The notes: a model not told the origin generated them from the letters alone. 64,000 bases of DNA from Monocercomonoides exilis PA203 (GCA_001643675.2 LSRY02000017.1:1116001-1180000); one strand, 5' to 3'; counted from the first letter of the stretch, positions 2,696 through 51,358 are shown. Translations and numbers: made by a program.

Positions 2696-3002
2696 TTTGC
2701 ATTGTTGAAAGAATAATTGCGTTTTGTATTTTATTCATTTCAACTAAAATTTTATGGTTTGTTTTGCGACAGCGAATAATTATTCACATCATTATTTATT
2801 TGGGGAAAAATTAAACTTAGAAAGGAAAGTTGAAAAAACAAACAAACAAATTACATTAATTTTTAAATATGCAAATTTTTTAAAGACATCAAAGAATAAA
2901 CAACAACATACACTCAACAGAATTGATTATATTTAACATCACGCAATAAATCAATCCGCAAATGATTTGTAAGAAAATAACAAGCACAACAAATATTTTG
3001 TA

Positions 3003-4298
3003 TTACCCTTCTTTCGATTTCGTTTTCTGTGAAAAAGTCAGTATATGGTCTATGATCTGCGATGCCACTTCAGACTTTGAGCATTTCTCAATTTTTTTAA
3101 TACCATCGTTCCAGATCATTGTGATTTCATTTTCATCGCTTCCAAACGTTAATTCTTTTTTAGACACGTCATTCGCACAAATCAAGTCCAGTTTTTTCTT
3201 TTCCAGCTTAATTCTCGCATATTCTTCAACACGCTCTGTTTCAGCTGCAAAGCCAACAACAAACGGCCGACGAGTTGTTAGAGAAGCCACACTCTTCACA
3301 ATATCAGGATTTTTAACAAGTCTCAATGTCATAATGTCATCCGCTATAACTTCAGAGGTTTGCGATGGTACCGATGAAGAAGATGTCTCGACTCCTTCAC
3401 TTTTCTTAATTTTTTGTGTAGAAACATGCTCAGGTCGGAAATCTGAAACTGCTGCACATGAAATAAATACATTAACGTCGTTATCTGTTTCAATAATTTT
3501 ATGAACTGCTTCGTGCATTTCCAGTGCTGTAACAACATCAATTCTTTTCACTCCAACAGGAGTCTCAAGCGTAACAGGACCAGAAATTAGTGTCACTTTT
3601 GCTCCCTTTGAGCGTGCAGCTGCTGCAAGCGCAAACCCCATTTTCCCTGAACTTCTATTACTTATGTATCTTACTGGATCAATCGCTTCTTGCGTTGGGC
3701 CTGCTGTTATCAAAATGTGAAATGGATTTAATTCCGAAATAGAATTAAAATAATTTTCCACATTCTTAACAAGTTCTCCTGGCTCAAGCATGCGTCCAAT
3801 GCCAATATCACCGCTTCCAAGACGTCCCTTCTCGGGTCCCCAAATTAAAATGTTTCTTTTTTTCAAAGTCAACAAGTTTTCTTGTGTTGCTGGCGCTCCA
3901 TACATTTGGAAATGCATGGATGGAGCTACAGCAATTTGCGATGGAGTCGCAAGGCACACGCAAGTCAATAGATCATCTCCCATTCCGCTTGCCAGACGAG
4001 CTAGAAAATCCGCTGTAGCAGGAGCAATAAGAATAATGTCAGCCCATTTTCCAAGTGCAATGTGTCCAATGGATCCCGGAGTTGATCTATCAAAAATGTT
4101 GTCTTCAACGGGGAAATGTGTAACAGCCTGCATTTGGCCTGAAGTTACCAGTTTCTCAGAGTTAGGAGTCATCACAGCTCTCACTTCTGCTCCAAGAGCT
4201 TCGAGCATTCGAGCAAGCTCTGGGCATTTTGAAGCAGCAAGTCCCGCTGTTATTCCCAAAACAATGTGTTTTCCTTTCAAGATATTCTTTTTATCCAT
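3003..4298 (-). CDS. coaBC: Bacterial-type bifunctional phosphopantothenoylcysteine decarboxylase/ligase CoaBC (Dfp), intronless; decarboxylase motifs degenerate
   Basis: Motifs present: GHIALGKWAD, APATAD, ITAGPTQEAIDPVRYISNRSSGKMGFA, AAVSDFRP, KIKK, VVGFAAET, VEEYAR, LDLICANDVS. It is colinear with E. coli Dfp at a +4 offset. Confidence 0.95.
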   Translation of the reverse strand: MDKKNILKGKHIVLGITAGLAASKCPELARMLEALGAEVRAVMTPNSEKLVTSGQMQAVTHFPVEDNIFDRSTPGSIGHIALGKWADIILIAPATADFLARLASGMGDDLLTCVCLATPSQIAVAPSMHFQMYGAPATQENLLTLKKRNILIWGPEKGRLGSGDIGIGRMLEPGELVKNVENYFNSISELNPFHILITAGPTQEAIDPVRYISNRSSGKMGFALAAAARSKGAKVTLISGPVTLETPVGVKRIDVVTALEMHEAVHKIIETDNDVNVFISCAAVSDFRPEHVSTQKIKKSEGVETSSSSVPSQTSEVIADDIMTLRLVKNPDIVKSVASLTTRRPFVVGFAAETERVEEYARIKLEKKKLDLICANDVSKKELTFGSDENEITMIWNDGIKKIEKCSKSEVASQIIDHILTFSQKTKSKEG

Positions 4299-5524
4299 AA
4301 CAGCAATTCTATTTTTCCCACAATTAATTTTTTTAAGAAAAAATCTTTGAAAAAATAGGATTTTTTATAAACACATTTCAGTTGAATGATTATTTTTTCT
4401 TAACAAATTGCATTTTCAACAAGACCTTTGTGACAGAACGACATTATTTTTTCTGCTTTATAAGTCGAACGACACTAGACCTATTTTTGTTAGAATCAAT
4501 AAATTCAAATATGTTAACTAATCCTTTGCGACAATTAAATTTTTTGTGAATTGAGTCGGTCGAATTTGCAAAAGAATGTCGACAAACTTCTAATTAACAA
4601 GAACAAATTGTTTTTTGATTATAAACTTTTTTCAGAAATAAATAATTGTCAATTATTCATTTTTTTTTATTTTAATATATATTCCTACATTTTTTCCTCC
4701 ATTGTTTTGATTGTTCTGATGTCTAATTAAATAAAGGGATGGATCAAAATGCTTTTCCTGAAATAGCTCCATCAGGCTTGGTTTGCACTCTGTTAATCAG
4801 TGGATAAACTGTGTGTTCTTTGTTAATCTGCAATCTTGATCAAAAATCGTCTTTGTCTTTCTATTTTCGTTTAATTATTCAAATAAGATATACTTATAAT
4901 TTTTTCTCTATTGTTCTGCACAATTGTTTTATCACAAGATAAATAAAGTAATTTTTTCAAATTTATCTTTGAAATTGGTTGAATAGTGTTTTTTAATCTT
5001 CAAATTTACAAATATGTTTATCTGAAAGTTTATCTTGATATAATTTCATTGAATTAAGTTTTGTTTAATGATTTTCTTATAATAATTGTTTCATTTCCAA
5101 ATATAATTGTATATTATTAACTTATTTTTTATCATTACAAGGATTTAGTCTAACTTAATTCTTGTTATTATATTTTTTTTACAAACAATAGAAACACTTT
5201 TCAAAAAATCAGTGAGCTTTCAGTTGCTGACTCCTTTTTCAAATTTCTGATATTCCAGAATAAGTAATATTAATAAAATGGTTTGAAAAGTCAATTGATT
5301 GTGAATTTCTCGTTCTTTGTAAAAGACAGAAATTTCGATCAAGCTTGGTAATGAAAAATTAAAACAAGAAGATATATATGTTGATTTGGGAAAGTGTAAA
5401 AAAAAATATATTGCATTGACTATGTCGTATGTGCTTCAAATTTTTTATTTGTTAACTGTTGGTTGAAAGAAGGCTTTTTTTTAAGATTTTAGGGTCAGAC
5501 AATATATAAGTTTTTGATCAAAAG

Positions 5525-12942: not shown

Positions 12943-15900
12943 ATGGTGAGGTGCTCCACCAGCATAAAAACTGCATTCCATTTTGCTGCATTGTTGTTGC
13001 TGGTTGCTCGCATCTGCAGTTGCAGAGGCATTGAAGAAATGCAAATTCAACAAATATGCGATGAGGAGATGCAGAAAGGCGAGATCAACATATCAGATGA
13101 AAAAGTAACGAATAGCAATAATTATCCCATTCGAAGGGAAGTGATTGGGAATGCAGCTGGCAACCGGTTGTGTTGTGCTGAAACAAGTCTTGTTATCGTC
13201 AACAGCACGTTGTGCGTGAGCCACCTCACCATGGTGCCTCTCAGCGGCTGTGCGTTTGTCACTGCCCACAAGCGCTCAGCTGCCACCATTTTCTCCTCTG
13301 CCTGCCAAATCCACACACACCACAATCACAATCACAAGCACCCCCCACTCTTCCTCTCTGCACACAGCTCTCTCTCACTCACGAACTTCTCCCTCCTTAT
13401 CCCTCAACCGGCCATCCTCTCCTCCCCCCTCTTCTCCACCCCAAATTATCTCTTCTCTTCTTCCCACTCCCCAGTCTCCACCTCCTTCTTCATCTCCCAC
13501 TCCTCTTTCTCCTCTTTCGTCTCCCTTCATCAGCCCTTCCTTTTTTCCCCTTCTTCCCCTCTCCACCCCCAAATCCACCTCAATCTCCATCTCTCAAGCA
13601 CACTCTTCTCCAATATCTCTTCTCTCTCACCACATTTAGCACAAACACCACTTTCCTCACACTCACTCACTCCATTCACCGCCACAACCACAATCACCAC
13701 AAACACCACACACCAGCACAACTCATTCACCACAACCACTGCCACCAACACCAATTCAAACACAATCCCCTTCCACTCTCTTCACTCATCAATTTCCATT
13801 CACTCAACCATCTTCATCCACACTCACAACCCAGTTGATGGTGCCATCCTCCCTTCCATCAACAGTCCATCCACTTCCCTTTCAGCCTTCAACTCTTCTT
13901 TCCTCCACCAAACTCGCTCTTTAGCAAATGCTGCTAAAGTGTATATCGGAAACGAAACTGATAGAAAAATACCAGGAAGATTGTCTGATTTTGATCTGAG
14001 CAGCCATTGCTTCGAATGGTGTGAATGGGAAGATTCAGACAGTGGAGATGATTGGGGTGGTGCGCTTCTAGTAAATTGCACAAATGCTAATCTCACAATT
14101 ACTTCTTGTTCATTCAATAAATGTTCATCCAATGGAGAAGGAGGAGCGTTATATTGTTATTTTTTGTCAAAAGTTAACATTTTAAAATCAAATTTCACAA
14201 ACTGTTCAGCATATCATGGAGGGGCAGCTGAAGTGTACGGACCGCAATCCAATTGTGTTTGGACGTTTGTAGAAAATAAAGTGGAAAGTTGCTCAATTAC
14301 AAATTGGTGTGGAACTGGTTGGTATTTTGCTCTTGGAAATACTCCAACAAACGGTCAATTCTTGTTCACCAAATGCAACTGCATTGCAAACTCGGGCTAC
14401 GATTCTTCTGGTGCTCTTACATTTCGTTATCCTCCAAATAATAAACCGAGACTATTTTTAATTAATGACTGCCTATTTATAAAAAACAAATTGAAAAATA
14501 CATCTTCATCTTATGGAGGTGCTGCAATCTACTGTAATCTAACTTTCACTTGGATGAGCGGAATGAAATTCATCACTTTTTGCTTCTTTGATGGTAATTC
14601 CGCTTCTAGTGGCAAAGGAAATGATGTGTTCTTCAGCGGAAGTGCAATCACCCAATCTCCTTTCCAGCAATGTGGTTCAACAACTCCAACAAAAAGAGTG
14701 TGGAATAATGGAACTGCTGACAACGCTGAATATAATTGCTGGCTACCAATCATCAACCAGAACAAAATCGTTGCAAATGGTGGAAATGATGTCGATGCCT
14801 GTGGCAAAACACAGCAAAGCCCATGTGCCACCGTAGAGTATGCACTCGGATGCATTGCTCCCTTCAGCGATGCCTCCCTCACTCTCCTCCTCTCCACTTT
14901 CACTCCAGCTCAGACACTCACGTTCCGTGCACCAAATACAAAAATCACAGGAAATAGCACAACTGCCACCACCATCGCCTCCAGTGGAATTCCCCAACCA
15001 ACTTATTCTTCCTCTCCATCATTTTTATCATCCTCTTCACCAGATCCATCTATCTCTTCTGCCCTCTTCGCCCAAACCCAGGGATCACTTACAGTCTCTG
15101 CCCTCGCCATCTCCCACAACTCCACAAATCAAATCACCACCATCCTCTTCCACCTCTCCGAAAACTCCCCTTCCCTCAACCTCAACACAACCACCATCAC
15201 CGGAACAACCTCCATAACAATAAAAACTCCGCTCTTCTTCCTCACTGCTGGCTCCCTCACCCTCAACCACACAGCAATCACCAGTTTCACCCTCAACAGC
15301 CAAAGCATCTTCCACCTCACCTCCCTCACAGCACCCCTCACCCTCAACTCCTCCAACATCACCCACATCACCTCCACAGCCACCCCCGCCAGCTGTGTCC
15401 TCTCCTCTGCCACTTCCCCTGCCCTCTCCCTCTCCCTCACCAACTGCACCATGACCAATATCGCCTCTCGACAGCTGAACCAAAATACTGCCACAGATGG
15501 CGGATGCATCTCATTCGCCTCATCCGCCTCTGACAATGCATTTTCGGTGAGCAACACCACCTTCTCCAGCTGCTGTGTGAGTGAGGATGCCAGCGCTGGA
15601 GGAAGAGGAGGAGGAATATATTTGGATTGCAGTTTGAATGAAGGAGGATTTCAACTTTCGTCAATATCGTTTTCTGGATGCTCGGCAACGATTGGGAAGA
15701 ACATGTTTGTAAAGAGCAGCAATCTGGTGAATACTGTGAATACAGAGCGTCTTGCAATTGTTAACACAGATTACGAGGATGATGGGAATGCATTTGTTGG
15801 GGAAGATGGGAAATATGGAGAAATGGATCTCCGAGTGTTTCTTGTTTCTTTGAAGTGGATGGTTGTGTCTGTGTCGAAGGATGGGCATGACACATTGGGA

Positions 15901-18900
15901 TGTGGGAGTGAAATATTCCCATGTCAATCGATGAAAAGTGGAATTGACCACATTGACAGAAGCGAGGCAGAAGGAGAAAGGAAAGTGAATGTGAGAGATG
16001 ATGGAACAATGGAAGATGCTTGTTTGTTTTCAAAAGCCATTGTGATTGATGGGTGTGTGAATGAGGGAGATGATGTGAAGCACAGACTTGTTCATTTTGA
16101 GGAGACTATCAAAGGGGATTCTGCATCGTCTTCATCTGTTATTTCATCAAGCAACTCGCTCATTTTGTTGTCTTTGAAGTTGCAGGTTCCAAGTCAATTT
16201 GTGTCAAACATGAATTCGTTGATTTCATCGAGTGGGATTCTTCAACTCAAAAACTGTTCCTTTGAAAATCAGTCATTAGATATCATTCAATACTCTTTGA
16301 TAACCACAACAAGTGGAAGTTGCACATTGAAAGAATGCAGTTTGACAGATTGTTCATTTGTCGAATGCCCATTGGAGATGAATTCTTCTGTTTTTATTGA
16401 AGACTGCAACTTAATAAATATTGTGAACACCGGAAGCAGTGAAGGAGGTTCAGCAAAAGTGATTTTGAAAGGGAATGAAAAACTGGAGATCAAATCGACA
16501 AATGCATCTTCTTGTTCGCTTTTAACAACAAATGGAAAAGGAGGATTCTTGTATCTTGATTGTCAAAATTGTTTGAATGAAACACCATTTCTTTTGGAAG
16601 GTGTAACATTTGAGAACAACAAAGCAGATATTGGAAAGAATATGTTCATTTTGGGAAAGGATTTCAACAGTTCTGTGACGAATGACTCATTCAAGTTTGA
16701 TTACTCATCAATGAAGGATGATAAGACTTTGTTTGTAGGAAGTGACAATTTTTATCAAGAAAAGGATTTATTCATGTTTCTGATTACATACAGCTCATTT
16801 GAGATATTTATCTCATTGAGTGGATTTGATGTGGAACGCTGTGGAAGTGAGGAAGAACCATGCTTCACAATGTGGAAAGGGATGGAAAACATGGAAAAGG
16901 GAAATGAAATGAAAACAATTCAGATTGAAGGATCAACAATTATTCGAGATTCATTCAACGTGTCCAATTATCAGATCAAAAAGAGTGTAAAGATGGGAGA
17001 AGAAGATACAAAAGCAATATTGAATATTGAAAAGGCAATTGAAACTCAGCTGGAATATTTCATGGAAAATGATAATCATCTTGAATTGACAAATATCCTA
17101 CTCCAACTGAAATCTGGATTTGACAATTCAGCCAAAACAATTATTTCAAACAAAGAAGGAGATTTAGTGATAACTGGATGTGCATTCCATTCAGAGGCTG
17201 GAGTGAACAATGGATTTGATTGTGTGTTTGTGGATGCGATTGGAGGCGGTGTGGAAGTGAATGATTTGTCGATGGAATCGTGCAATGTTGGAAACAGTAT
17301 ATTTACCATTCGCGATTCTGGAGTTGTTTGCCATTTGGTGAATGTTCGAGTGGAATTGTTGAATGAAAGTGGAGGATGCATTTTGTCAATCAAGAAATCT
17401 GAGTCAGGATCAAAATTGAAAAACAAAAATGAGAAAATAAATCTTCAAATTGAGAAATCATCATTTTCAGGAGTAAAGAGAAGTGACAATGGAGCGAGCA
17501 TTTTGGAGTCTGCGAGTGAGAATAAGATTTGTTTGGTTGTGAATGAGAGTAACATCACAGAAGACAAAGCAGATACAAGTGAAAAAGGAGGGGCGATATT
17601 CTTCACATTGGGTGCATCTGGATCAATGAAGATGATTGACTCAACAATCAGCCATTGCGGCTGCAGCGAAAGCAGGGGAAGAGGAGGAGGAGTTCATCTG
17701 GCAACAAAGGAAAGAGGAGAATTGGATTTCGCATTTGTGGGGATGAAGTTCAGTGCAAACACAGCAAGTGTGGGGAATGATATTTTCATTGAATGCTTTA
17801 ACATCACATCGCAGATCAATGAAACCCAGTTTCGATTTGATCTTCGAGAAGGCCATTACACCAGAATGAATGCGATATATGGAATTGATAGTTGTGAGCA
17901 CACAGATGATACAGATCTGATTGATTTTGTGACGATCCATCAGAGCGATACAATTGTTGTGAGCAGCGTGAATGGATCGAATGAGAGACAATGTGGAACA
18001 AGCACACTTCCATGTGCTTCGATTGATTATGGACTGATGCATCTGACTTCAGATTTCATGAGCCAAATGATTGTTATCGGAGAGAGCGTGATTGGTGAAG
18101 AGATAAATCTGAAAGAAATGGGCCTAAGTTCGAAGAACAGAGAGATGTGTGAAGTTGAATTTGAAACAGAGATTGAAAAAACAAAGGAATCTTTGATGAA
18201 AACAACTGGAACAGTTTCATTGCTGAGAGTGAACTTTGTGTTTGATCCAAATTTCATCTCTTCTCACAAATCATTGATATCTCCAGAGGGAGGGATTCTT
18301 GAAGTGATGAATTGCTCATTCGCTTCAAAACAATTGACAGAAGAAGGAAGTATTTCTTTTACTGAAATTCCATTTCACATTATTAATGTAGAAAAAGGAG
18401 AATTACAACTTGATGGATGCTCAATATCAAATCTCATTCTTCATGAATCAGCGTTATATCTTTCATCTTCTCTTCCATCAGTGATTTATTTATTAACGAT
18501 TTGCAATTCAACAATTAAAACTTCTTTGATAGATCTTAATGAATGTGGACAATTAACAATTAAAGATTTCAAAACAGAAAATATCACTGTTGAAGGAAAT
18601 GAAGAATCATTGATATCTTGCTTGACAATGAAAAAGACGATGCAGTTAACGAATTGCACAATGGGCGGAGTCAGTACAAACAATGCAAAGGGGAAATTGA
18701 TGAAATTGGAGGATTGTTTGGATGTGAAAATGGACAGTTGCATTTTCGAAGGAAATTCAAAAGAAAGAAATGAGAAGAAGTTGAATATGGAAGAAGAGAT
18801 ATGCAGATGGGATGGATCTTTAGTGGATATTGTGAAGAGTTCTGTGGTGATGAAAGACACAACAATCTCGAATTCACCAAAAGGTGGAATATCAATGAGT

Positions 18901-20805
18901 GGAGGAAATGTGATTATTGAAATGGGGTTGTTTGAGAATAATAATCCATCAATTGAAAATTATCCATCGTTGAGAAGAAATATCATTTGTTCAGATTCAG
19001 GAACATTGAATGTGATGAGTTTGAAAGGAGGAGATGGATTGGAAAGAAACACATCTCTTTGGATGCTGAATGGTGGGTGCAACTTTGAAGGGATTGTTTC
19101 AGAAAGGGATTCATCATTCTTCATTCCTGTGCTGGAAAGTGTGGAAGCAAAAGAAGAAACTGGTAGAATGAAACTGACATTCAAAGGAATGCTTCTTGTT
19201 CCATGCAATCTATCATTCGCAGTTGTGAAGCGAAAGGGAGAAGAGAAAGAGATTGAAAAACATGATTTTGATTCAAATGGGTTTTTGTCAGAAAGAGAAG
19301 CAGAAGGAAGTGCGGGAAAAGATCTCATCAACAGTTGTGGAGACGAAATAGAAGTGAGTGCATGTATTTTATTTGGGAATGCTTATTCTCCTTCATCAAC
19401 AAATCCATTTGTTCTGAAAAATGCAAGTGAAACAAAGGGAAATGGAGATGGAAGGATTGTTGAAGGAGGAAAAGATCAAAAATCATTTTGGCTGATCATT
19501 GTGATCATCATGGCAATCATTCTCATGATTGTGCTTATTGTGTCTGTTGTTTTGGCTGTTCGATGGAGAAAACAAAAGCGAAGAACAGAGGAGTTGGAAA
19601 TCGTTGTGGAAGACACAGTGAGGAAGGATCCGAAGTTGATTGAGATGACAACGATGGAGATGTCTCCCGAGGAGCAATGGCGAAGGGCGGAGAGGGAAGC
19701 TGAAAAGAAGAATGAAGAGAGGATCAAGAAGAGGGTGTATGCGAAAAGCTTGGGACACTCAGAGTCATCAGAGCATCTTCTCTCTGAGAGTGGATCAACT
19801 GAATACATTCTGGGAAGAGACTCAGATAAGATTCCTGATTGGGCATTGGAAAAGGAGGAGGAAGAGACGAGAAAGAGAACTCCATCGCCATCTATTTCAT
19901 CAACTTCATCCACTTCAACGACAGACACAGAATCCACATTTGTTCGTGGGGAGGACTTGTGTCCAACCACATCATCAATGTCGAATCTGGTGGATGCAAT
20001 GGCCTGCTCCTCGCCTCATGAGAAGCTGATTGTGGATTTAAGAGATTCATTGTTCATGCTTCTTCATGGAAGAAATGAGAAAAAAGAGATGGCAATTGGG
20101 AGTTTGCAGGAGAGGGAGCAGACAGCTTCCCAAATCCTGTTCTGGGTGGCAAATCTCGCACTTCACTCCTTTGATGAGATGGAAAATTTTCTTCAATCTC
20201 TTTCCAATCTCAGTCCTCATATTGTTCTATTCTCAGAACACATGGTCATTTGTATTGTGATGCACTCCGACTTTTCTTCAGATTCAGATTCATCCTCAAC
20301 CTCGTCATCGACCGTTGTGACATCTGCCAGTGACAATGATGATGATGATTCTCTTCCTTCATCAGCGTTTGAGGATGATGATGATTTCAAAAAAGAGTGT
20401 TTGAGGTGGAAGGCACCTGAGCTACTGATGAACAAGAAGATGGGAGCGACAAAGAAGTCGGTGGTGTTTTCGATTGGGATGATGGCGTGGGAGTGTCTGA
20501 CGCTCCAGATCCCGTTTGGGGAGTATGAGGCGGAGGTGGCGGGGCAGAAGATTGCGAATGGGGAGAGGCCTGGGCCAGAGGAGCTTGAGGGATGCGAGCT
20601 GAGCAAGGGGGTGAAAGCGTGCTTGTCGCAGAATGGAGAGGAGAGGCCAGGGCTGATGGATGTGAAGCGGGAGCTGTTTGGGCACTTCCCGGCCGGGGCT
20701 GTGATGGTCACAGTGACTGATGCGATTGGGTTGGAGGTTGGGTCGGGGGATAGAGATGGAAGTGGGGATAGTGAAGCTGAGAGTGGAGATTCGTTGATTC
20801 GATGA
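12943..20805 (+). CDS. Giant single-exon type-I membrane protein (2620 aa): signal peptide, Cys/GGA-rich repeat ectodomain (4 modules), TM, kinase-like (pseudokinase) tail
   Basis: Uninterrupted 7.8-kb ORF. N-terminal FHFAALLLLVARIC; recurrent CGxxxxPC and GGxIxL...FxxNxAxxGxxxF motifs; TM SFWLIIVIIMAIILMIVLIVSVVLAV (~19483-19560); kinase C-lobe motifs RWKAPEL, KSVVFSIGMMAWECLTLQIPF, CL...ERP. Confidence 0.9.
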   Translation: MVRCSTSIKTAFHFAALLLLVARICSCRGIEEMQIQQICDEEMQKGEINISDEKVTNSNNYPIRREVIGNAAGNRLCCAETSLVIVNSTLCVSHLTMVPLSGCAFVTAHKRSAATIFSSACQIHTHHNHNHKHPPLFLSAHSSLSLTNFSLLIPQPAILSSPLFSTPNYLFSSSHSPVSTSFFISHSSFSSFVSLHQPFLFSPSSPLHPQIHLNLHLSSTLFSNISSLSPHLAQTPLSSHSLTPFTATTTITTNTTHQHNSFTTTTATNTNSNTIPFHSLHSSISIHSTIFIHTHNPVDGAILPSINSPSTSLSAFNSSFLHQTRSLANAAKVYIGNETDRKIPGRLSDFDLSSHCFEWCEWEDSDSGDDWGGALLVNCTNANLTITSCSFNKCSSNGEGGALYCYFLSKVNILKSNFTNCSAYHGGAAEVYGPQSNCVWTFVENKVESCSITNWCGTGWYFALGNTPTNGQFLFTKCNCIANSGYDSSGALTFRYPPNNKPRLFLINDCLFIKNKLKNTSSSYGGAAIYCNLTFTWMSGMKFITFCFFDGNSASSGKGNDVFFSGSAITQSPFQQCGSTTPTKRVWNNGTADNAEYNCWLPIINQNKIVANGGNDVDACGKTQQSPCATVEYALGCIAPFSDASLTLLLSTFTPAQTLTFRAPNTKITGNSTTATTIASSGIPQPTYSSSPSFLSSSSPDPSISSALFAQTQGSLTVSALAISHNSTNQITTILFHLSENSPSLNLNTTTITGTTSITIKTPLFFLTAGSLTLNHTAITSFTLNSQSIFHLTSLTAPLTLNSSNITHITSTATPASCVLSSATSPALSLSLTNCTMTNIASRQLNQNTATDGGCISFASSASDNAFSVSNTTFSSCCVSEDASAGGRGGGIYLDCSLNEGGFQLSSISFSGCSATIGKNMFVKSSNLVNTVNTERLAIVNTDYEDDGNAFVGEDGKYGEMDLRVFLVSLKWMVVSVSKDGHDTLGCGSEIFPCQSMKSGIDHIDRSEAEGERKVNVRDDGTMEDACLFSKAIVIDGCVNEGDDVKHRLVHFEETIKGDSASSSSVISSSNSLILLSLKLQVPSQFVSNMNSLISSSGILQLKNCSFENQSLDIIQYSLITTTSGSCTLKECSLTDCSFVECPLEMNSSVFIEDCNLINIVNTGSSEGGSAKVILKGNEKLEIKSTNASSCSLLTTNGKGGFLYLDCQNCLNETPFLLEGVTFENNKADIGKNMFILGKDFNSSVTNDSFKFDYSSMKDDKTLFVGSDNFYQEKDLFMFLITYSSFEIFISLSGFDVERCGSEEEPCFTMWKGMENMEKGNEMKTIQIEGSTIIRDSFNVSNYQIKKSVKMGEEDTKAILNIEKAIETQLEYFMENDNHLELTNILLQLKSGFDNSAKTIISNKEGDLVITGCAFHSEAGVNNGFDCVFVDAIGGGVEVNDLSMESCNVGNSIFTIRDSGVVCHLVNVRVELLNESGGCILSIKKSESGSKLKNKNEKINLQIEKSSFSGVKRSDNGASILESASENKICLVVNESNITEDKADTSEKGGAIFFTLGASGSMKMIDSTISHCGCSESRGRGGGVHLATKERGELDFAFVGMKFSANTASVGNDIFIECFNITSQINETQFRFDLREGHYTRMNAIYGIDSCEHTDDTDLIDFVTIHQSDTIVVSSVNGSNERQCGTSTLPCASIDYGLMHLTSDFMSQMIVIGESVIGEEINLKEMGLSSKNREMCEVEFETEIEKTKESLMKTTGTVSLLRVNFVFDPNFISSHKSLISPEGGILEVMNCSFASKQLTEEGSISFTEIPFHIINVEKGELQLDGCSISNLILHESALYLSSSLPSVIYLLTICNSTIKTSLIDLNECGQLTIKDFKTENITVEGNEESLISCLTMKKTMQLTNCTMGGVSTNNAKGKLMKLEDCLDVKMDSCIFEGNSKERNEKKLNMEEEICRWDGSLVDIVKSSVVMKDTTISNSPKGGISMSGGNVIIEMGLFENNNPSIENYPSLRRNIICSDSGTLNVMSLKGGDGLERNTSLWMLNGGCNFEGIVSERDSSFFIPVLESVEAKEETGRMKLTFKGMLLVPCNLSFAVVKRKGEEKEIEKHDFDSNGFLSEREAEGSAGKDLINSCGDEIEVSACILFGNAYSPSSTNPFVLKNASETKGNGDGRIVEGGKDQKSFWLIIVIIMAIILMIVLIVSVVLAVRWRKQKRRTEELEIVVEDTVRKDPKLIEMTTMEMSPEEQWRRAEREAEKKNEERIKKRVYAKSLGHSESSEHLLSESGSTEYILGRDSDKIPDWALEKEEEETRKRTPSPSISSTSSTSTTDTESTFVRGEDLCPTTSSMSNLVDAMACSSPHEKLIVDLRDSLFMLLHGRNEKKEMAIGSLQEREQTASQILFWVANLALHSFDEMENFLQSLSNLSPHIVLFSEHMVICIVMHSDFSSDSDSSSTSSSTVVTSASDNDDDDSLPSSAFEDDDDFKKECLRWKAPELLMNKKMGATKKSVVFSIGMMAWECLTLQIPFGEYEAEVAGQKIANGERPGPEELEGCELSKGVKACLSQNGEERPGLMDVKRELFGHFPAGAVMVTVTDAIGLEVGSGDRDGSGDSEAESGDSLIR

Positions 20806-26457: not shown

Positions 26458-29400
26458 TCATTTCCTATCTCTTTGTCTTTCTCTTCCCGAATACTTTGCC
26501 TTATACTCGTCTCTTCCTTCTCTTCCACTTCTTCCATCTCTTCCATCTCTTCCATCTCTGTAATCTCTGCTGCTCCTGGCGCCTCTTCCAACGCTCCCAT
26601 CCTCTTCCTCTACCTCACCACTATCACTCTCATAGCTGTCTTCAGACACTGCTGAATTGTGTGTGTGCATGCGATATCTGCTGCTGTGTGCTGAACGAGT
26701 GGCTGGCTGCCTTGATGACTTGTGCCGTGGTGTGGTGTTAGAAGAGAACGAGCCAGAAACATGGCGAGAAGAAGAAGAAGAAGAAGACGATGAAGGATTC
26801 TTCCGGGCCAACCGCGCAGACGATGATAGACGCTGCCTATCTTTGCGGGTGTGCTGCTCATCCTCCTTCTCATATCTCTTTCTGCCAGCGTCAAAGTCCT
26901 CCTCTTCTGCACTGTCGCTTCTATCTGAGGGGCTCTCGCTGTATCCGTGGCGCCTGGACAGCTTCGACAGCTGAGGTGTTCTGGGAGAGTCGCGGCGGTA
27001 TGAACTGCCTTGGGACGATCGCTCACGTGGAGAAGAGGACTTGTAGGGTGATTCTCTTGAATGATGTCTTTCTTTTGGAGGTCTTCTATCTCTTTCTCTA
27101 TCTCTATCACGTTCTCTGTCAGCATCTCTTGCTCTGTCATTTGGCTGTTCTCTGCGATAATCTCTGTCTCTGTCTCTGTCTCTGTCTCTGTCTCTTTCCC
27201 TCTCTCTTTCCCTGTCTCTATCTCTATCTCTGCCTCTGCTCCGAGCTCTGTTGTCTTCGGAGTTCCAATCTTCTTCTTCTTCTTCTTCATGTCGAGTCCT
27301 GTCATATGATGCATCTCTATCTCTGTTATATCCTCTTTCTCTCTCACGTCTCTCTCTTTCTTCTCTCTCCCTTTCCCTTTCTCTTTCCATCTCCTTTTCT
27401 TTCTCTATACGTGCTCTTTCTTCTGCCTCTGCTCGTTCTGCCTCCATAATCATTTTTCTTTCCCGCTCCCTCTCCAAGTTATATACTCTTTCCCTTTCTC
27501 TCCTCTCCTCCAACGTCTCTTCATATTCCATATAATCACTCGCTCTTAAGGAAGACGACCGCAAAGCTGGTGATACAGCACTCACATCAATTGGAAGCCC
27601 AGTATTTTCGTCTATCATCATACTGTCTTCATCTTCCTCTCCAATCAAAATGCTCTCTGTGTTGATTGGAACAGCGCTTTTCCCTTTCGCCCTGAGTGAC
27701 TGTGCAAGTGTCTGCTTCAGCAGGAGCTGCTGCTTCAGTGCCACTTCTTTCTCTTTTGCTGCTCTTTCCTTCTCAATCGCCAAGTCTCTCTCCTTCTGCA
27801 GCAATTGGAGTTCTCTTTCTCGCTCTTCTCTTCTTAGCTTCTCGCGCACTGCTTCTTCCAGCTGCCTCGCCATCTCCTTCTGCTTCTCCTCTTCCTCTTT
27901 CCTCTTCTTCTCCAACTCCTCCAATAATCTTTTCCTCTCCTCTTCCTCTGCTTTCAGCTTCCTCTCTCTCTCTTCTTTCTCTCTCTGGATGCGTTCTCTT
28001 TCATCTGCTCGGATTCTCTCTTCTTCCAATCTCCTCTCTTCCATCTGTCTCTCAAGCTCTGCTCTGATCTTCTCTTCCCGCAGCCTTTCTTCCTCTCTCT
28101 TCATCTCTTCCTCTTTCCTCTTCTCCTCTTCCTTCTTTCTTTCCTCTTCTTTCCTCCTCTCTTCTTCAAGGCGCCTTTCTTCTTCTAATCTCCTTTCTTC
28201 CTCTTTCCTCCGTGCTTCTTCCTTCTCCTTCTCTTCCTGCAGCCTCTTCTCTTCTTCCCTCTTCTTCTCCAAATTTCTAATCCATTCTTCTTCAAACCTC
28301 TTTTGCTCTTCTTTTCTTCTTTCCTCTTCTTTCTTCTTTTCTTCTTCTCTTCTCTTCTCTTCCTCTTTTCTCCTTTCTTCCTCCTTCCTCCTCTCCTCTT
28401 CTCTCCTTTGCTCCTCTTTCTTCTTCTCCTCTTCCAGCTTCTTCAGTTCTTCATCCAATCTTTCCTTGATAATCCTCTCTCTCTCTCTCTCTTCCTCTAT
28501 CTGCAGCTGCTGCAACAACTGCGACTGCTCATTGTCGCTGTCTGACTGCGAAGCATTCGACATCAAGTCGTCTTTCTTCAGCTCATTCTCTTCCGCATTG
28601 TGTCTGCTTCTCAGTTCCCTTAGCCTTCTTCTCTCCAACCGCCGCTCCGCTTTCGCTCTTTCTTCTTTCTCTCTCTCAAACGCTTCCCGCTCGCGCTCTA
28701 TTTGCAGCTCTTTCTCTCTCTCTGCTCTTTTCCTTTCTTTTTCCCTTCTCTTTTCTTCTGCTTTCTTTTCTCTTTCTCTCTTCTGCGACTCCTTCTCCTT
28801 TTCTCTCAACACCTCTCTTTCTTCTGCAGTCACAATCGTCCACTTGTTCTGCACAGGCTTTCCGTCAGAGGTTGCCACCACTCTCACAAGCTGTGCCCAT
28901 CCTTTGCCCAACAGGCGCTGGCAACGCGGCTTCACAATGCAGCCATTCAATGCCTCGTGGTGTATCAGACGGCGCTGCATCTCCTTCGCTTCTTCCTCTA
29001 CAAACATCCTCTTCAATTGAATTTCTTTCTGTTGGTTCTCTTGCAAAATCTCTTCTTTTCTGTCTTCTTTCTTCCTCTTCTTTGATTTTTTGTCCTGCTC
29101 TCCCATGTCCATGCATCTTCCGATGCCCTGTTCGCCATCAGAAGCCAAAGGATCTGCTGTAAGCCACTGCATCAAAAACTTGTGCTTCTCTTCTTTTGCT
29201 TTCTTCATTTCTGCATCCCATTCGCTATCGTCAATCTCGTCGTTGATAAGCAGCGTCATCTTCTTGTTGTCAGCAAAGCTCACTGGAACAGCCACAAACG
29301 GAGCAGCTTCCTTTTCTGCCTCCAAATCGAACTCTGTTATTGCTGCCTGCTGCTCCTTCATCTCAATCTGTCGCTGCCTCACCAGCTCTTTGAACTCGTT

Positions 29401-32400
29401 GCTGTTCTCGTCAACCTCATCCCACTCCACAAACACTTCATAATGCAGCGGATCCAGCTGGTTTTCTTCGATGTCCTCCTCTTCATCTGCGTCGATCATG
29501 TGCGACACAAGAATGTCCAATGTCTCTTCGCTCAGCGGTGCATTCAGATTGATGTTCTGCACATTGAACTCCTCTGTGCTGTCAAATGTGATGCCCATGT
29601 CCAGCAAAAAGTCTTCAATTGCATCTGCGTCATCATCATCATCCACATCGCTATCAATCTCCAAAGGCACAGACACAACCGTCGACAGCTCTTCGTCTTC
29701 CTCCTCACGACGCAGTCTATCTTCTCTCGCCTGCTCACGCTGCACCCTCCTTTCCTCTCTCCTCTTCCTCCGAAGATCCAAGCTCTCTTTGAACTCTGCC
29801 AATTTGTCCTTCAGCTCCCGCTTCTTCTCTTCTCTCTTTCGGATCATACGTTCTTCACGTGTTCTTCTAATGCTCGCCCTCTTCTCCCTCACCCATGTCC
29901 GAGCCTCTTCTGTCCATGATGCAAGTATGTCTGCCTCTTTCTTCACATTAAGTGTCTCCACTGCTTCACCAAACTTCTTCGTGCACTGATACAGCAGCTG
30001 CTGTGGTGTCATCACAACATCGCAGAATGTTAAGTTGTCTGGAGGAATCAGCAACGGTACATCAAACATGTTGTATACAACATGAATACGCTGGTCTTCT
30101 CCCTCTTTCGTTCCATCGCCAAACGAAAGCGAAAACAGGCTTTCTGTCTCACTGCGCAGCTGATCTGAAGGCGGTGAACGACGCGACAAAGGTGATATTT
30201 GACGTGTTTGCGATTTTTTGCCCAGTTTGGAATCAGCCAATTGCATCCACAGAGGCTGTGCAGGCTTGTTGAGGATGACTTGTGAATATGTGGAGTTGAC
30301 AAGTGTAACAACCACATCAGAAAACAGTATTCTGTTCTGCACACGCAGCACTTTCTTTCTGTTCAGGATTTTCTTCCTCAGCTGTGCATAGATCTGCTTG
30401 TATGTCTCTATCATCCTTGATTGGAATGTCTCATCCACTTTGCTTCGCAGGCCAAGTTTTTCTTCTCTCTCTCTTTCTCTCTCGCTCTCCTTCCATTGTT
30501 GCTCATCCTTGGCAAGTTCCTGGTCTTCTTTTTCATCTTCAGCTGATGAAGCATATTGCAAGAACTGCTCTGCTGGATCAGCTGCTGCTTCATCTGGCGG
30601 CTGCTCGTCTGACAGCTGATTGGGCTGAGACAGCTCCATGTCCATGTGCACCTCCTTCATATACTCTGTGATGTATTCATACTTGCTGGGATCTTCCTTC
30701 GCTAGGGCTGTTCCCACCTGCTTGTACATCCGCTTCATCTTCGCAAGCTCTGCATCGTCGTCTGCTCGAGGCGCAAATGGAATGAATGGACGAAGCAAGT
30801 CGATAAATGCTGCAATGTGCTCAACAGCATCTTCTGTGTGCACAAGCTCTGCTCGTGAAAGAGTGATGCGAAGTGTTTCACACACAGGCACCATCTGGAT
30901 GGGTGGATAAGCTGCCTCGCTGTTCTCTCCCATGCTCATCTGGTAATGCGATGCGTACATTGATGACGTAGTGGCTGAGTTGAATGAGTGTGGAGTTGCT
31001 GGATAGTTTGCAGGGCGTGGAGTTGGTGGAACAGACGCCAGTGGAACATTCACTTTTTCTCCTTCAATGAACGGAATGGGCATTGTGGCGCTGCGGCGAG
31101 GCAGTAAGACAGACACAACAACCGAAACAGGGTCGAGATTGGGGTTAAATCTGGGTGTTTCTGAAATGACGTGAGTTCCGCTAATTCCGCGAGGAGACAC
31201 GACAGGCACGCGGGACTGAGCTCTCAGCAGCACAGACGGTGTGCTTGGCTGAGGGAATGGAGATCGCATTGATGAGAATCCAGAGCGCATAGTTGGGTAG
31301 AGTCCTCCTTTGATAGAAGGAGTGGAGCCAGGTGTGGAGTATGGCGTGAATGACTGTGCGTGGAGTGTTGAAGCACGGCGAAGTTTGGAAGCAGAGGCGG
31401 AGGAAGCAGAATAAGCAGATGAAGAGTTCTCTGCGTATGTTTCTTCGACCTGGTTGTGGTGGATTGCGCAAATGAACTGGTTGGCTGCATCAAGTTGCTC
31501 GATGGCGTGAGCAGAGTTTGTTGTTTGGAAGGGTGCCATTGTGAAATTGAAGAGAACATGACGGAGTGACGGCAGCTCCTCTTCCATCGACAGAATTGGC
31601 ACATCGCTGAGGATGTTGAAGGTCATTTCTTTGATCAAGTTCAGCGTCTTCTTCTTCAGCTGCTCTTCTGTTTCGGTTCTTTTGATTGGATCAGACTGCT
31701 GTGAATCAGAAATATACATGCGCTTCTTCAGATCATCGTCTTTCCCGCTTTCTGTGTTGTAGTTCTTTGCAAAGTGTGTTCTTGTCTTCAGAATGCTTCC
31801 AATCTTCCGGCTATACTGCGCGAACAGCGAGTCTGCAATGTCTTGCTGGCTACCAGTGAATGAAGCAGAGAACGATGTTTCGGTAGCTGTTGTTGTTGAT
31901 GAAGGAGACAAAGTAGAAGTGGATGCTTGCAAAGAAGAAGAGGAGGAAGATGAAGAAGTACCCTCTGAACTGTTCTTCTTATTCAGTCCAAACAGCGAAG
32001 GTAGTTCATCTTTCCACTCACTTGGGAGTGCCTCCTCTTTAGCTTCTGTATTCTGTGCTTGTGTTGAGTTTCCGTTTGGCTGAACAAGCGATGTCTCTCT
32101 TGTCACCAATGGAGCAGAACGCAGATCCATCGAAGACGACTTCACAGTAAACATTGCCGAGAATGTTGGTGTCCAACCAACAGACACAGCCACTTTGTCC
32201 AGAATGGCTGTCAGCGGAAGAGGAGACTCACAATGATCCAGCTGTGCTATCACAAAGCGTGTGAAGGTTAAAGTGCACACATACGAAGGTGCCACAACAG
32301 GAACTGTGAACTTCGGCTGGTGTGGCTGTCTCACTGCACTTCGTCGAGACACAAACGATGTGACATCAGAATAAAGACTCATCGAATCAAACGAGCTGAC

Positions 32401-35400
32401 ATATGACTTCAGCTTTCGTACAGATCGTCCATCGTCCATGATGCCAAAGCCAGCCTGCGATGTGAGTTCGTCCATTTCACTCAGCACCGTTGAGCGCTGT
32501 GTCCTGATTTCGTCATTGGCTGCTGATCCTCTCTCATCTTCCTCGTTCTCGTTCGGCTGCTCCTGTGCCTGCAGATACTCTGTTATCATCTCAACATATT
32601 CCCCAAGAATCCGATGAGAAACGTGGAACCGTGACACACATGTATCCAAAGTGCTGCTTTCGTTAAGTGCCACCATCAGAGAATCTCTTTCTCTCCTGAT
32701 TTCCTCTCGGCTCAGTGTTTGCTCTGTGCTGTGCTGGCCATCTGATCGCTGTGATGTGTTTGCATCTTCGTCGTCAACTTCATTGTCGTTTGCCAGCTCT
32801 GTTTCAGGATCTGGTTGCTCAGGCCACACAGACCGTACTTTCAGATAGCATCCGCAAACATAAACAGCCTCTTCCTTCGCAGTGAATGCGTTGGATGCCA
32901 TTCCTGCATCTATCGATGCCAGTTCTCTGTATTGTAGCATTGTCATCAAAAGTGCCTTCCTGACTTCGATTTCTCCTTCGATACGTGCATCCTCTGCAGA
33001 CATAGGGTTTCCGCTGCTCAATGCCATATTCCGCAGACTCTCGCTGTCCCACACTTTGTCAATGCTGATGGCATTCAGCCCTGCTGCTCTGATTCCCTTT
33101 GCTCCGGTTCTGCTGTGTTCCGCAGTTAGCCGAAGAGCTCTGTCAACCTGCTGGCTGACTGTAAGTGGAGATGTGAACGACAACCTGCATCCAATCTCCC
33201 TCTCAAGCAGATGATGCAGATGCCGAGGAAGAGAAGAAGCCGGCAGTGGCAATGCAGCTCTGAGGTATGCAACAGAAGAAGGATCAATCTGTTCTTCAAT
33301 TGCAGTTACTGTGTATGTTGCCAGAGTGAAGCAGGATGTGATTGACGGATCGGGTGATATAACAAATGAAGGCAAGTGTGCTTGGATGGTTGTTTGTGGC
33401 TGAGACAGGCAGCGATGAGGATGGTTGATGGAGAGAACAGTGAGTGAAGATACACCAGTAACTGAGCCAATCTGTTTTGTTATCCAAGTCTTTGCAGAGG
33501 TTGTTGCGCTGATTGTGAGTCCAGATTGCATCGTGCCATGGAACACTCTTCCGATGTGGAATGAACCCAGCACTGCACCTTCGAGTACAGAGGAATATAA
33601 TGAAGAGAACAACAACTCAAATGGAGGAAGTGCAATTGTGAAGCATGGGTTGCCTGCAGACCGATATGTCTTCTTGAACTTGTCGTCTGTTGTAATCTTC
33701 AGTGTTGCACTATTAGTCAGTGAGACAGTCACCAAAGAAAGAGCCGACGCATTGGTGAGAACAAGAGGGCTCATTCTGTGTTGCATTGATCCTTCTGCTT
33801 GTGCAGTGAATGAGTGCACTTTTCTGTCAAATGCGCTTTCTCTGATTATGTCAAGTGAAGTTGACATTGAAAGCAGAGATTTCAAAGTGGATGGAGCAAA
33901 GACTGCTGATACAGATGCCAGTTCAACAGCAATTGGTGCCTTTCCAGGAGATTTGCTCTGCACATCTGATTTTGTTGGGAAGTTAATGAAGAACTGTTGT
34001 GATGGATCAGTAAATGCAACACTCACAGCTTTGATTGTCGAAGTAGAGCAGAACTCATTTGGTGGGATGAATGTCAGTGATGAGCCGATATCGTAGTCAG
34101 GAATTGTGAGCAGTCCCGTCTCTGTTTCTGCATTGCCTGAGGAAGACCTGAATGTTCTGGTTGATCTGGCTGAAGGAAGAGGAGTGGCTCGCATGGTGCC
34201 GAAAGTTCCACCAGCATACATTGAAGCGTTGGAAGGTGCATATGTCTGTTGTGGCTTTGCTGTTGCTGATGGGTCTGATACATTAATCTCCAACTCCTTC
34301 AGATTGACTGACATTTGTGCAAGTGCAACTTTTGGATTCTTCTTGAGGATAACGTCAGTCGAAAGAGAAGTGACCAGAAAGACCAGCCTTGCTCCCACTT
34401 TTGTTTCCACTTCATCCTCTTCAGCAGGTGCTTGCCCAAACCACGTGTTATCTTCGTTATCCAGATCATCCTGCAGATCATCGTCGATCTCGTTGCCGTT
34501 GTGTGAGGCAAGTGCAGAAGTGTACTGTGCTGTTGAGTCGTACTGGTATCCGCTCTGAATCATCGTGTATGTTGTGCCAGTAATATACGCACTGCGGGAA
34601 ACGATTGAACCAACAAAAGAGCTGATTTCAACAGAGATGCAAAGCGATGTGGGCTGTGATGTGAATGTTGGCTGATATGACGCTTGAGCTGTCTGACTGT
34701 CACGGTTGTGCCTTGAAACAGCATTTGGTGACCCATTTGGCTGAATTCTCTGTGTGTTGAGCGAGTCTTCCATGTTTGTCTTTGGCAGGCTTCTGGAGAA
34801 GCGATGAACAAGTGTGACAGCATCGATATGATCCTGAACAAGATGCGCCATAAACGAGAGAATCGGCAGCGACACTTCAAATTGAGGAAGCGGGCGTTCA
34901 GACAGATCAGACGGGAATGAGACAGATGAGAAGCCGTCTGATGCAGCGCCTTGCTCGTGATTGAATGAGCGTGTGAATCCCTCAGCCTGTGTCAATGGAT
35001 TATCCAGTGCCATGTCTTGTCCTGACTCTGACATCTCTTGTGGCTCTGGCTGCAATGACACTCGCAACGAGCGATGTGGGGCAGAAAGCGGACTGTCTGT
35101 TCTGAATGAGGAATACACAACTGTCAGAAGTGGAATGTTCAGAGCGGATTCGTTGAATGAATGAGAATCATGTGTTGACCCGTTCTTCTTTGAAGGGAAT
35201 GTGACGATGGATGACTGCAGCGGAGGAGCAGAGCGTTGTCTCAGTTTGAACACAGACGAAGACGAAGATGAAACAGATGCTTTCTTTTGTGGTCCACAGA
35301 ACACTGCGGGCATCTGCTTCACATATGGATGGAGGGCGGGAACAGCCTGTGAAGATGTTATGATAGACACACTTTTCAAGGAAGAAGACGAAGAAGAGAA

Positions 35401-49700: not shown

Positions 49701-51358
49701 AAGAAAATAACCTTCCTGATTCATCATCATCATCCTCCTCCTCCTCCTCTTCTTCTTCTTCTTCTTTTCCTTCTTCTGTTGCTGCTTCTGTTGCAGATAT
49801 ATCCAGTTCTGTTCTCTCTGCCACGGGGCAGCTGGTGATTGAAGACTCAACGACTTCACAAACTCTTGTCCCGCCTTCTGTGCCTATTGGCGGCAGTACT
49901 CAGACTTCTTCTGCAAAGGGAGATGGAAATACAAGCTCTTCTTCATCATCTTCTTCCTCCTCTTCTTCCTCTTCTTCTTCCTCTTCCTCAACTCCATCTG
50001 CCAGCGACGACATCGCCCTCTCCTCTGTCCCTGCCTCCTCTCTGATGTACATGCTCACCCCTCGTTCTCCACTTGATGCTCCATCCAAAAAGATCCGCTC
50101 AACCATCGCTAAGACAGGTGCTACACCAACTGCGTCAAGTCCTCTTGTTTCTCTCTCTGCGTCTGCGTCGGCTGCTGCCATTGCTTCTTCTTCTTCTTCT
50201 TCTTCTTTTTCTTCTTCTCCCCACCCGACTGCCCCTGCGCTGCACTCCAGGCAGAACTCACAGACGCCGTCCAGAAACTCCCTCCAGCCAGCTCTCAACA
50301 CACTCACCACACTCGCTTCTTCTGTCACAAGTTCATCGTCTTCTTCTTTCTCTTCCTCTTCTTCTTCCTCCTCTTCTTCATCGTCTTCTCTTTCTCTTTC
50401 TCCTTCTCCTCTTCCCATTCAAGCCAACACTGCCGCAACACCTGCTGTGTCATTTGTGCGCTCCACACTCTCCTCTTCTGCAATGGCTGCTCCTGTCATC
50501 CCCATCTCCTCTGTCTCCTCCACCTCTTCTTTAGCTGCCTCTCTTTCATCTGCCATCGCCCCGTCCTCGCCAGCCCCTGCCTCCATCCCCATTTCACAAC
50601 CGGCTGCTCCTTATTCTCCTTCTGTGAGTCCTCTTCCTTCTTCCTCTTTTGCTCTTTCTCTTTCTCCTTCTCCTTCACAAGCACCTTCATCAACATCTTC
50701 TTCCCGATCTGTTAATTCTGATACAGGCGCGCTTCTGCTGTCGTTTGCGCGGTTCAACAGAAGAGAAGGCGGAGCACAATCTGCCCAGCCGTCTTCAGCT
50801 TCGCCTCTTTCTCTGTCGAGTTCACAGACTGCTTTTGGGAGAGCGTCTTCACGTTCTTCGTCTCCTTCTTCTTCTGCTTCTTCTATTGCTTCTTCCTCTG
50901 TTTCATCAGTTTCTCCTTCCACAGCTTCTTCTTCTTCTTCTTCTATTTTATCTCCTCCTCCAGTCACCCAGCTCATTGCCTCTCCTATTCAACATCATTC
51001 TCCTCCTCATTTCACACCTTCATCTCCTCAGATAGCTCCTCCAAAGCAACCACAACTGCCTTCTTCTTCTCCTTCTCCTCCTTCTCCTCCTTCTAATTCA
51101 TTACAGATTTCTTCTTCTTCTTCTTCTTCTGTCTGTTCTGTTGCCCAGCCGAATGCGCTGAGTGAGATGGAGGCGCAACACAGGCAGATGATGGCTGCAA
51201 TGGAGATGAGGATGAAGCAGATGGAAGAAGAACTCATCCAGAGCCTAGAAAATGAAGAAGATGAGGAAGAAGAAGAAGAAGACAATGATAATGGAAATGG
51301 AAATGGAAATGGAGAAGGTGAGGGCGAGGGTAAGAGGAAAGATATTAGTGATAAATAG
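46753..51358 (+). CDS. Mucolipin/TRPML-like cation channel with a very long Ser-rich C-terminal tail, 5 exons
   Basis: N-terminal MSPFQKWKKYRIFPWK (mucolipin-like) and pore LFALMNGDVVLEVF; S6 LFFITVVLNIFISIIEESY. Four GT-AG introns keep the frame, and the last exon starts at ~48003. Confidence 0.85.
48983..51130 (+). repeat. TCN trinucleotide / poly-Ser low-complexity region inside the channel gene
   Basis: Long TCT/TCC/TCA runs, e.g. ~48995-49125 and ~49340-49465. Confidence 0.9.

Follow-up and report, generated by a model that had tools for sequence, protein, structure and literature searches.

A fused CoaBC gene in Monocercomonoides

The sequence analysed here (hereafter the window) is a 64,000-nucleotide stretch of the Monocercomonoides exilis PA203 assembly (GCA_001643675.2, LSRY02000017.1:1116001-1180000). 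On its minus strand, at positions 3003..4298, it carries a bacterial-type gene for coenzyme A (CoA) synthesis, encoding a fusion of phosphopantothenoylcysteine decarboxylase (PPCDC, or CoaC) and phosphopantothenate-cysteine ligase (PPCS, or CoaB), in which the CoaC half has changed at its active site and the CoaB half is intact. The coding sequence is intronless, with an open frame of 431 amino acids. It matches the TIGR00521 model (coaBC_dfp) at 434.9 bits (cut-off 219.7) over model positions 1–391 of 392, and both PF02441 and PF04127 score above their cut-offs in a profile search, the combination that defines the CoaBC/Dfp family. The CoaC domain, of the HFCD flavoprotein type, spans residues 10–181 (3756..4271, minus strand; PF02441 95 bits, profile positions 1–159 of 162), while the CoaB domain spans residues 194–395 (3114..3719, minus strand; PF04127 230.9 bits) and is fully canonical. 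By its architecture and its CoaB half, the protein is thus a member of the CoaBC family.

An AlphaFold model of the fused protein has a mean predicted local distance difference test (pLDDT) score of 89.7, with most blocks of the CoaC domain above 90, and its best fold match in the PDB is the CoaBC of Mycobacterium smegmatis (6TGV). For the model domains, template modelling (TM) scores were 0.93–0.95 between the CoaB half and E. coli CoaB, and 0.85 against the plant enzyme AtHAL3a. A Ser-rich low-complexity insertion of ∼16 residues is found in a surface loop of the CoaB domain (residues 303–318; 3345..3392, minus strand), with pLDDT below 50 and predicted to be disordered, and corresponds to a gap in the alignment with the E. 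coli and M. smegmatis proteins. In E. coli the loop that bears it is short, and in M. smegmatis it is disordered.

The fused protein aligns to E. coli K-12 Dfp (L005:1732-2952) with a constant offset of +4. An earlier note on this DNA, made from the sequence alone, had used this offset to argue that catalytic residues of CoaC are lost, and the residues and codons it named are all correct: A18 (gcg, 4247-4245), H129 (cat, 3914-3912) and S162 (agc, 3815-3813). Equally accurate was its statement that the catalytic His of PPCDC (H75 in E. coli, H90 in AtHAL3a) is kept, as His79 (4062..4064, minus strand), in an E. coli-like GHIxLGKWAD context; this residue is invariant in all 151 bacterial CoaBC sequences of the comparison set described below. 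The other motifs, all on the minus strand, are altered (substitutions are given in E. coli numbering). Motif 1 reads GITAGLAASK (4227..4256), where E. coli has GVSGGIAAYK. In the PXMNXXM motif, PSMHFQM replaces PAMNQQM (3903..3923; A123S, N125H, Q126F), so that the Asn (N125 in E. coli, N142 in AtHAL3a), present in 150/151 bacteria, is His129. The substrate clamp reads GRLGSGDIGIGR, against GSQACGDIGPGR (3792..3827; Q156L, A157G, C158S, P163I), and its redox-active Cys (C158 in E. coli, C175 in AtHAL3a), found in 146 of the 151 bacteria, is Ser162. A fourth degenerate stretch, LVTSGQ in place of FITPLS (4134..4151; F46L, P49S, L50G), falls at positions where F46 is Phe in 150/151 and P49 is Pro in 138/151 bacteria. 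Beyond the Asn and the Cys, the changes in the CoaC domain outnumber those listed in the earlier note, and include I16L, F46L, P49S, A123S, Q126F, Q156L, A157G and P163I. In the 119 nearest bacterial CoaBC sequences G14, I16, H75, A123, N125, Q126, Q156, A157 and C158 are invariant, and at these nine positions the fused protein has A, L, H, S, H, F, L, G and S, respectively. Since the Asn and the Cys are both absent, the CoaC domain is not classed here as a PPCDC enzyme.

One element of the earlier note did not hold. It had counted the G14A substitution in motif 1 as a sign of lost flavin mononucleotide (FMN) binding, but the same residue is found in a canonical paralogue from this genome (see below), as well as in seven CoaBC sequences from Halomonas/Vreelandella whose motifs are otherwise perfect. 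I therefore do not regard G14A as a defect. Of the two paralogues, only the fusion has I16L and Y19S in motif 1, and the stand-alone copy retains FITPLT in the F46 region. With regard to FMN binding or decarboxylase activity, these changes (I16L, Y19S, F46L, P49S) are suggestive only.

Conservation of the two halves

In order to place these substitutions against natural variation, 151 distinct bacterial CoaBC sequences were compared, from loci picked via their CoaB motifs and from two phylum-wide samples, a set in which the Actinomycetota were not sampled systematically. Selection on CoaB motifs avoids a bias in the CoaC motifs. Columns conserved in at least 95% of the set were defined as near-universal, which gave 26 columns in CoaC and 31 in CoaB. 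The fused CoaC domain deviates at seven of its 26 (I16L, Y19S, F46L, A123S, N125H, A157G and C158S), whereas the CoaB half of the same protein deviates at none of the 31 (Fisher test, p = 0.0025), and the stand-alone paralogue at none of the 26 (p = 0.0098). Among the bacterial sequences themselves, 108/151 show no deviation in the CoaC columns, and the maximum is three. These counts bear out the claim that, in a protein with an intact CoaB half, constraint has been lost specifically at the active site of CoaC.

The change is also unevenly spread within the CoaC domain. Within four windows around the motifs (E. coli residues 11–21, 43–52, 120–130 and 152–166), which were picked partly after the data had been seen, the fused protein matches the bacterial majority residue at 19/47 positions and the paralogue at 37/47 (p = 0.0003). 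Over the rest of the domain the two are alike, with 68/129 and 64/129 matches (p = 0.71). This motif-restricted decay, taken together with the confidently predicted fold, suggests that the fold is under selection and that the catalytic and cofactor pocket is not. Decay confined to the pocket is the signature of a putative pseudoenzyme domain, kept for a structural role.

A canonical stand-alone CoaC

The earlier note had called for a genome search for a separate PPCDC, and such a gene is indeed present. A six-frame profile search, carried out exon by exon over the 82.3-Mb, 101-contig assembly, identified a single PF04127 locus (the fused gene) and two PF02441 loci, the second of which (G000:C14:1653646-1654155) lies within a stand-alone CoaC gene of 185 amino acids on contig C14 (G000:C14:1653628-1654185, equivalent to L001:1483-2040). 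It possesses all canonical PPCDC features, with the motifs AGIAAYK, GH (H76), PAMNQQM and ACGDIGKGR, and shows 56% identity to the CoaC half of the fused protein over 179 residues, without gaps. No CoaB remnant was found next to it, and no second PPCS in the genome search. The EukProt entry MONOS_12897, from Monocercomonoides, is 100% identical to it, and in an exact look-up among assemblies the 185-residue protein was not on record. The public gene model MONOS_12897 (131 amino acids, starting MGLMN) is truncated and mis-started, and the 185-residue reading frame adds the GIAAYK flavin motif.

The two Monocercomonoides CoaC sequences are sisters in a 176-row tree of the CoaC domain, with a Shimodaira–Hasegawa-like approximate likelihood ratio test (SH-aLRT) value of 99, and again in a careful 47-row tree (ultrafast bootstrap 99, SH-aLRT 97); both trees place the pair within a group of Enterobacterales sequences. 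They have the derived states G14A, A43S, P67R, E70P and T109C in common. A single transfer, with the CoaC part duplicated afterwards, is the most economical history. Beside its own His, the stand-alone protein carries I76L (seen in 0/151 bacteria) and K80S, where the fused protein retains I76 and K80, a weak hint that the two may have specialised in complementary ways.

Sequence verification, transcription and origin

Several independent codons are changed, and the earlier note had considered sequencing error unlikely on these grounds. Independent data agree: in a comparison made on Logan contigs rather than raw reads, every letter of the DNA contigs (2016 and 2022) and of the RNA contigs (2024) agrees with the window. 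The DNA contig of the 2016 run spans 2912-4303, and the RNA contigs of two 2024 runs cover 2697-3320 and 3308-4292, and 2727-3315 and 3326-4292, respectively. Sequencing or assembly error as the cause of the substitutions is thus ruled out. The RNA contigs reach 2697 and 2727, and cover a 3′ untranslated region (2697..3002, minus strand). RNA depth is zero at 2600-2673 and at 4302-4800, while the DNA run X5 covers both flanks; the flanks being silent in RNA but covered in DNA, the signal over the gene is more likely a transcript than carried-over DNA.

The gene resides in the nuclear genome, on a 1.6-Mb contig (G000:C11, the window being 1116001-1180000) whose sequence in the window is AT-rich, with low density of open reading frames (ORFs) and some giant ones. 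Its best matches are gammaproteobacterial CoaBC sequences, at 50–54% identity, with the nearest clusters from Yersinia and Edwardsiella, and the donor would be an Enterobacterales-like gammaproteobacterium. In a tree of CoaB only, the donor is left unresolved within the Gammaproteobacteria, with a weak grouping with a Halomonas sequence. The GC content at third codon positions (GC3) is 0.30, compared to 0.53 in E. coli dfp, and the flanks have 26–28% GC. This composition marks the gene as an old, ameliorated lateral acquisition, and not as contamination; bacterial contamination was rejected on the basis of contig size, eukaryote-type neighbours and GC3.

In the same genome, a eukaryote-type pantothenate kinase (Fumble) was identified, along with CoaE and cytidylyltransferase matches. 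No eukaryote-type PPCS or PPCDC was detected in the six-frame, exon-by-exon search, which a heavily spliced gene could escape. Given one PF04127 locus and two for PF02441, the second and third steps of CoA synthesis in Monocercomonoides appear to run on bacterial-derived genes. A literature search found no paper on CoA synthesis in this organism.

Comparison with known systems

Compared to bacterial CoaBC/Dfp (E. coli b3639), the fused protein has an identical two-domain architecture, the same length, a fully conserved CoaB half and matching predicted folds. It differs in being nuclear-encoded in a eukaryote, in seven changed near-universal positions of CoaC, among them the Asn and the clamp Cys, in the disordered Ser-rich insertion of its CoaB domain, and in the existence of a separate CoaC paralogue.

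The closest analogue of the pair is found in yeast, with Hal3/Vhs3 and Cab3 (PMC9604783). The PPCDC active site spans the subunit interface, which allows paralogues to complement each other: in yeast the His is all that remains in Hal3 and Vhs3, and the Asn of the PXMNXXM motif and the Cys come from Cab3 (PMC9604783). The fused protein conforms exactly to the Hal3 pattern, with the His kept and neither Asn nor Cys, and the stand-alone CoaC, like Cab3, carries both. There are, however, several differences. The yeast genes are paralogues of eukaryotic PPCDC, whereas the Monocercomonoides pair would derive from a bacterial lateral gene transfer followed by duplication, and here the degenerate copy is fused to PPCS. 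Furthermore, the canonical stand-alone protein also keeps its own His and could act as a homo-oligomer, and a heteromer of the two is hypothetical.

A fused, E. coli CoaBC-like PPCS-PPCDC has been reported in Entamoeba histolytica (EHI_164490; PMC6114107), which is also an anaerobic gut protist, so that the presence of a bacterial-type CoaBC in a eukaryote has a precedent. Compared by description only, the Entamoeba enzyme is a single bifunctional protein, for which no combination of a degenerate CoaC and a stand-alone CoaC is reported.

A proposed division of labour

The explanation I favour, and consider probable without being secure, is subfunctionalisation following lateral transfer and duplication, whereby the fused protein would act as PPCS, its CoaC part being a scaffold with a degenerate catalytic core, and decarboxylation would be left to the stand-alone CoaC. 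The ancestor of Monocercomonoides would have gained one gammaproteobacterial (Enterobacterales-like) coaBC gene, from which every PPCS or PPCDC homologue detected in the genome would now stem, and its CoaC half would later have been duplicated into a stand-alone gene keeping every catalytic motif. With this second gene in place, the CoaC domain of the fusion could have lost the constraint on its active and cofactor sites, while keeping that on its fold. The fused protein would be the phosphopantothenate-cysteine ligase of the cell, its N-terminal domain acting mainly as an oligomerisation core that holds the CoaB dimers. Such a role is known for CoaC trimers in bacteria, where they form the core of the tetrahedral CoaBC dodecamer and position the CoaB dimers (PMC7794376), and M. 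smegmatis CoaB alone is inactive, CoaC being required for its stability or activity (PMC7770189). That the domain may serve only as an oligomer scaffold had been one of the options in the earlier note, and with decayed motifs and a retained fold it is, judged from the sequence, the best reading. Decarboxylation of phosphopantothenoylcysteine would fall to the stand-alone protein, alone or in mixed oligomers, and in the latter the fused protein may still donate His79 across the subunit interface, as Hal3 and Vhs3 do for Cab3.

Taken further, this last possibility would amount to a yeast-like split PPCDC, built independently from bacterial parts, with composite sites to which the fused protein gives His79 and the stand-alone CoaC gives the Asn and the Cys. 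I regard this as unlikely. If true, such composite sites would tether the decarboxylase to the ligase inside a single CoaBC-type particle.

If the proposed subfunctionalisation is correct, this pair of genes offers an unusually clear example, from nature, of a domain becoming a pseudoenzyme, in which only the active-site motifs decay, selection still acts on the fold and on the fused partner, and catalysis passes to a sister paralogue. The pair also indicates that in an amitochondriate eukaryote the second and third steps of CoA synthesis depend on bacterial genes gained by lateral transfer, and it would provide a second, independent test of the idea derived from yeast Hal3 and Cab3, that active sites located at an interface favour a division of labour between paralogues.

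A number of points count against the proposed subfunctionalisation. In addition to the partly retrospective choice of the motif windows, the fused CoaC has a terminal branch just 1.3 to 1.6 times as long as that of its paralogue. In word searches no orthologues were found in other eukaryotes, oxymonads included, the sole eukaryotic match being MONOS_12897 from Monocercomonoides itself. The two hallmark residues are also not present in all bacterial CoaBC proteins. In M. smegmatis CoaBC, whose structure is FMN-bound (6TGV), the Asn position is naturally occupied by His and that of the clamp Cys by Gly. In the comparison set, C158E occurs in two Stenotrophomonas (L037, L066) and in one Bacillota genome (G052), C158S in another Bacillota genome, and N125D together with C158S in one Anaerolineae genome (L060/L087); the Bacillota variant loci L127 and L160 have Glu or Ser at this position. 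I considered whether these bacteria hide a canonical CoaC, and rejected this, as a PF02441 search of the five variant genomes found no second CoaC. The additional PF02441 matches were none in Stenotrophomonas, UbiX in the Anaerolineae and the Ser-variant Bacillota, and in G052 a protein that matched neither the CoaC nor the UbiX model. Such variants in sole-copy bacterial CoaBC imply that the two hallmark substitutions do not, on their own, prove inactivity. The variant proteins may be active by another route, and it is a separate question how sole-copy CoaBC enzymes without the clamp Cys or the Asn, in mycobacteria, Stenotrophomonas and the Anaerolineae genome, complete the reaction. By analogy, the fused CoaC domain could retain some activity.

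These observations are the basis of the main rival explanation, in which the fused CoaC domain has remained a working PPCDC, with His129 taking the part of the Asn and a different proton donor that of the clamp Cys, in convergence on the mycobacterial type, and with the stand-alone CoaC as a redundant or differently regulated isoenzyme. The mycobacterial sequence, which reads PAMHTEM and GRLTGADSGPGR, resembles the fused protein in having His for Asn and no clamp Cys; the N125D+C158S, C158S and C158E bacteria have CoaBC as their sole PPCDC candidate; and in the fused protein His79 and the fold are kept, and the overall rate of change is modestly raised. M. smegmatis CoaBC is also a dodecamer with a CoaC-trimer core and a CoaB dependent on CoaC, an organisation like that proposed here for the fused protein. 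The resemblance is nonetheless partial, as the mycobacterial enzyme keeps GGIAAYK, F46 and A123, lacks I16L, Y19S, F46L and A123S, binds FMN, and is presumably the sole PPCDC of the organism. The earlier note had stated that its reading would fall if the same substitutions were common in active bacterial CoaBC. For the two hallmark residues this is partly so, with comparable changes in M. smegmatis and in the sole-copy variants, which may be active, but the seven near-universal deviations of the fused protein are unmatched, with a maximum of three in any sampled bacterium. Ser is also the classic inactivating substitute for the clamp Cys, and in yeast Cab3 this replacement abolishes function (PMC9604783). 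Lastly, a canonical paralogue takes away the selective need for activity. An active fused PPCDC is for these reasons doubtful.

Improbable in my view is a new function for the CoaC domain, either a LanD-like arrest at oxidative decarboxylation, yielding an enethiol, or the binding of another ligand, for instance in the regulation of CoaB. The Cys-less HFCD enzymes EpiD and MrsD are among the PDB homologues of the fused protein, His79 is kept, and the scaffold positions are under constraint. The C175S variant of AtHAL3a (PDB 1MVL/1MVN) has the same Cys-to-Ser change in its clamp, and stalls with the oxidatively decarboxylated enethiol bound, according to the entry title; unlike the fused protein, however, it was made in the laboratory, by a single substitution in a eukaryotic PPCDC that is otherwise canonical. 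The Asn needed for the first, oxidative step of the reaction (PMC9604783) is also changed in the fused protein, the motif-1 and F46-region substitutions speak against an intact flavin site, and the neighbourhood shows neither evident partner genes nor a peptide substrate.

The earlier note had further proposed that the ligase half couples cysteamine directly and bypasses decarboxylation, for which the degenerate CoaC domain is the only argument, and this I consider very improbable, as the fully canonical CoaC on contig C14 makes a bypass unneeded and the 31 unchanged CoaB columns give no sign of altered substrate specificity. An artefact, whether contamination, sequencing error or a decaying pseudogene, is just as remote: the nearest relatives are bacterial, as described above, but contig size, neighbours, GC3 and the identity of all DNA and RNA runs stand against it, as do the open frame, the perfectly conserved CoaB half and its status as the sole PF04127 locus of the genome.

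Genomic neighbourhood and additional observations

Two of the large reading frames in the window encode eukaryote-type proteins. An ORF of 2620 amino acids at 12943-20805 (plus strand) ends in a protein-kinase domain (residues 2483–2578), and one of 1187 amino acids at 47795-51358 (plus strand) contains a polycystin cation-channel domain. Such kinase and polycystin-like neighbours argue against contamination. Two giant open frames are also present, of 5937 amino acids at 26458-44271 (minus strand), with a GC content of 47–48% compared to ∼30% in the surrounding sequence, and of 2978 amino acids at 52850-61786 (plus strand). Neither has a Pfam match at E ≤ 1e-4, for the former over the 4900 amino acids scanned.

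Three further observations concern bacterial sequences. In the genome of locus L076, labelled Akkermansia (G003), CoaB and CoaC are separate genes on different contigs (C8:22879-23487 and C16:15512-16036), and this genome is a bacterial example of a split CoaB/CoaC arrangement. A contig labelled as an Actinomycetota metagenome-assembled genome (L084/L089) encodes a CoaBC that looks proteobacterial (QACGETGAGRM), and the phylum sample is proteobacteria-like; possibly the contig, or its label, has been wrongly assigned. Finally, the 90%-identity cluster of Yersinia CoaBC (P0002) also lists dUTPase members of ∼150 amino acids, probably an artefact of clustering caused by the overlap between the dfp and dut genes.

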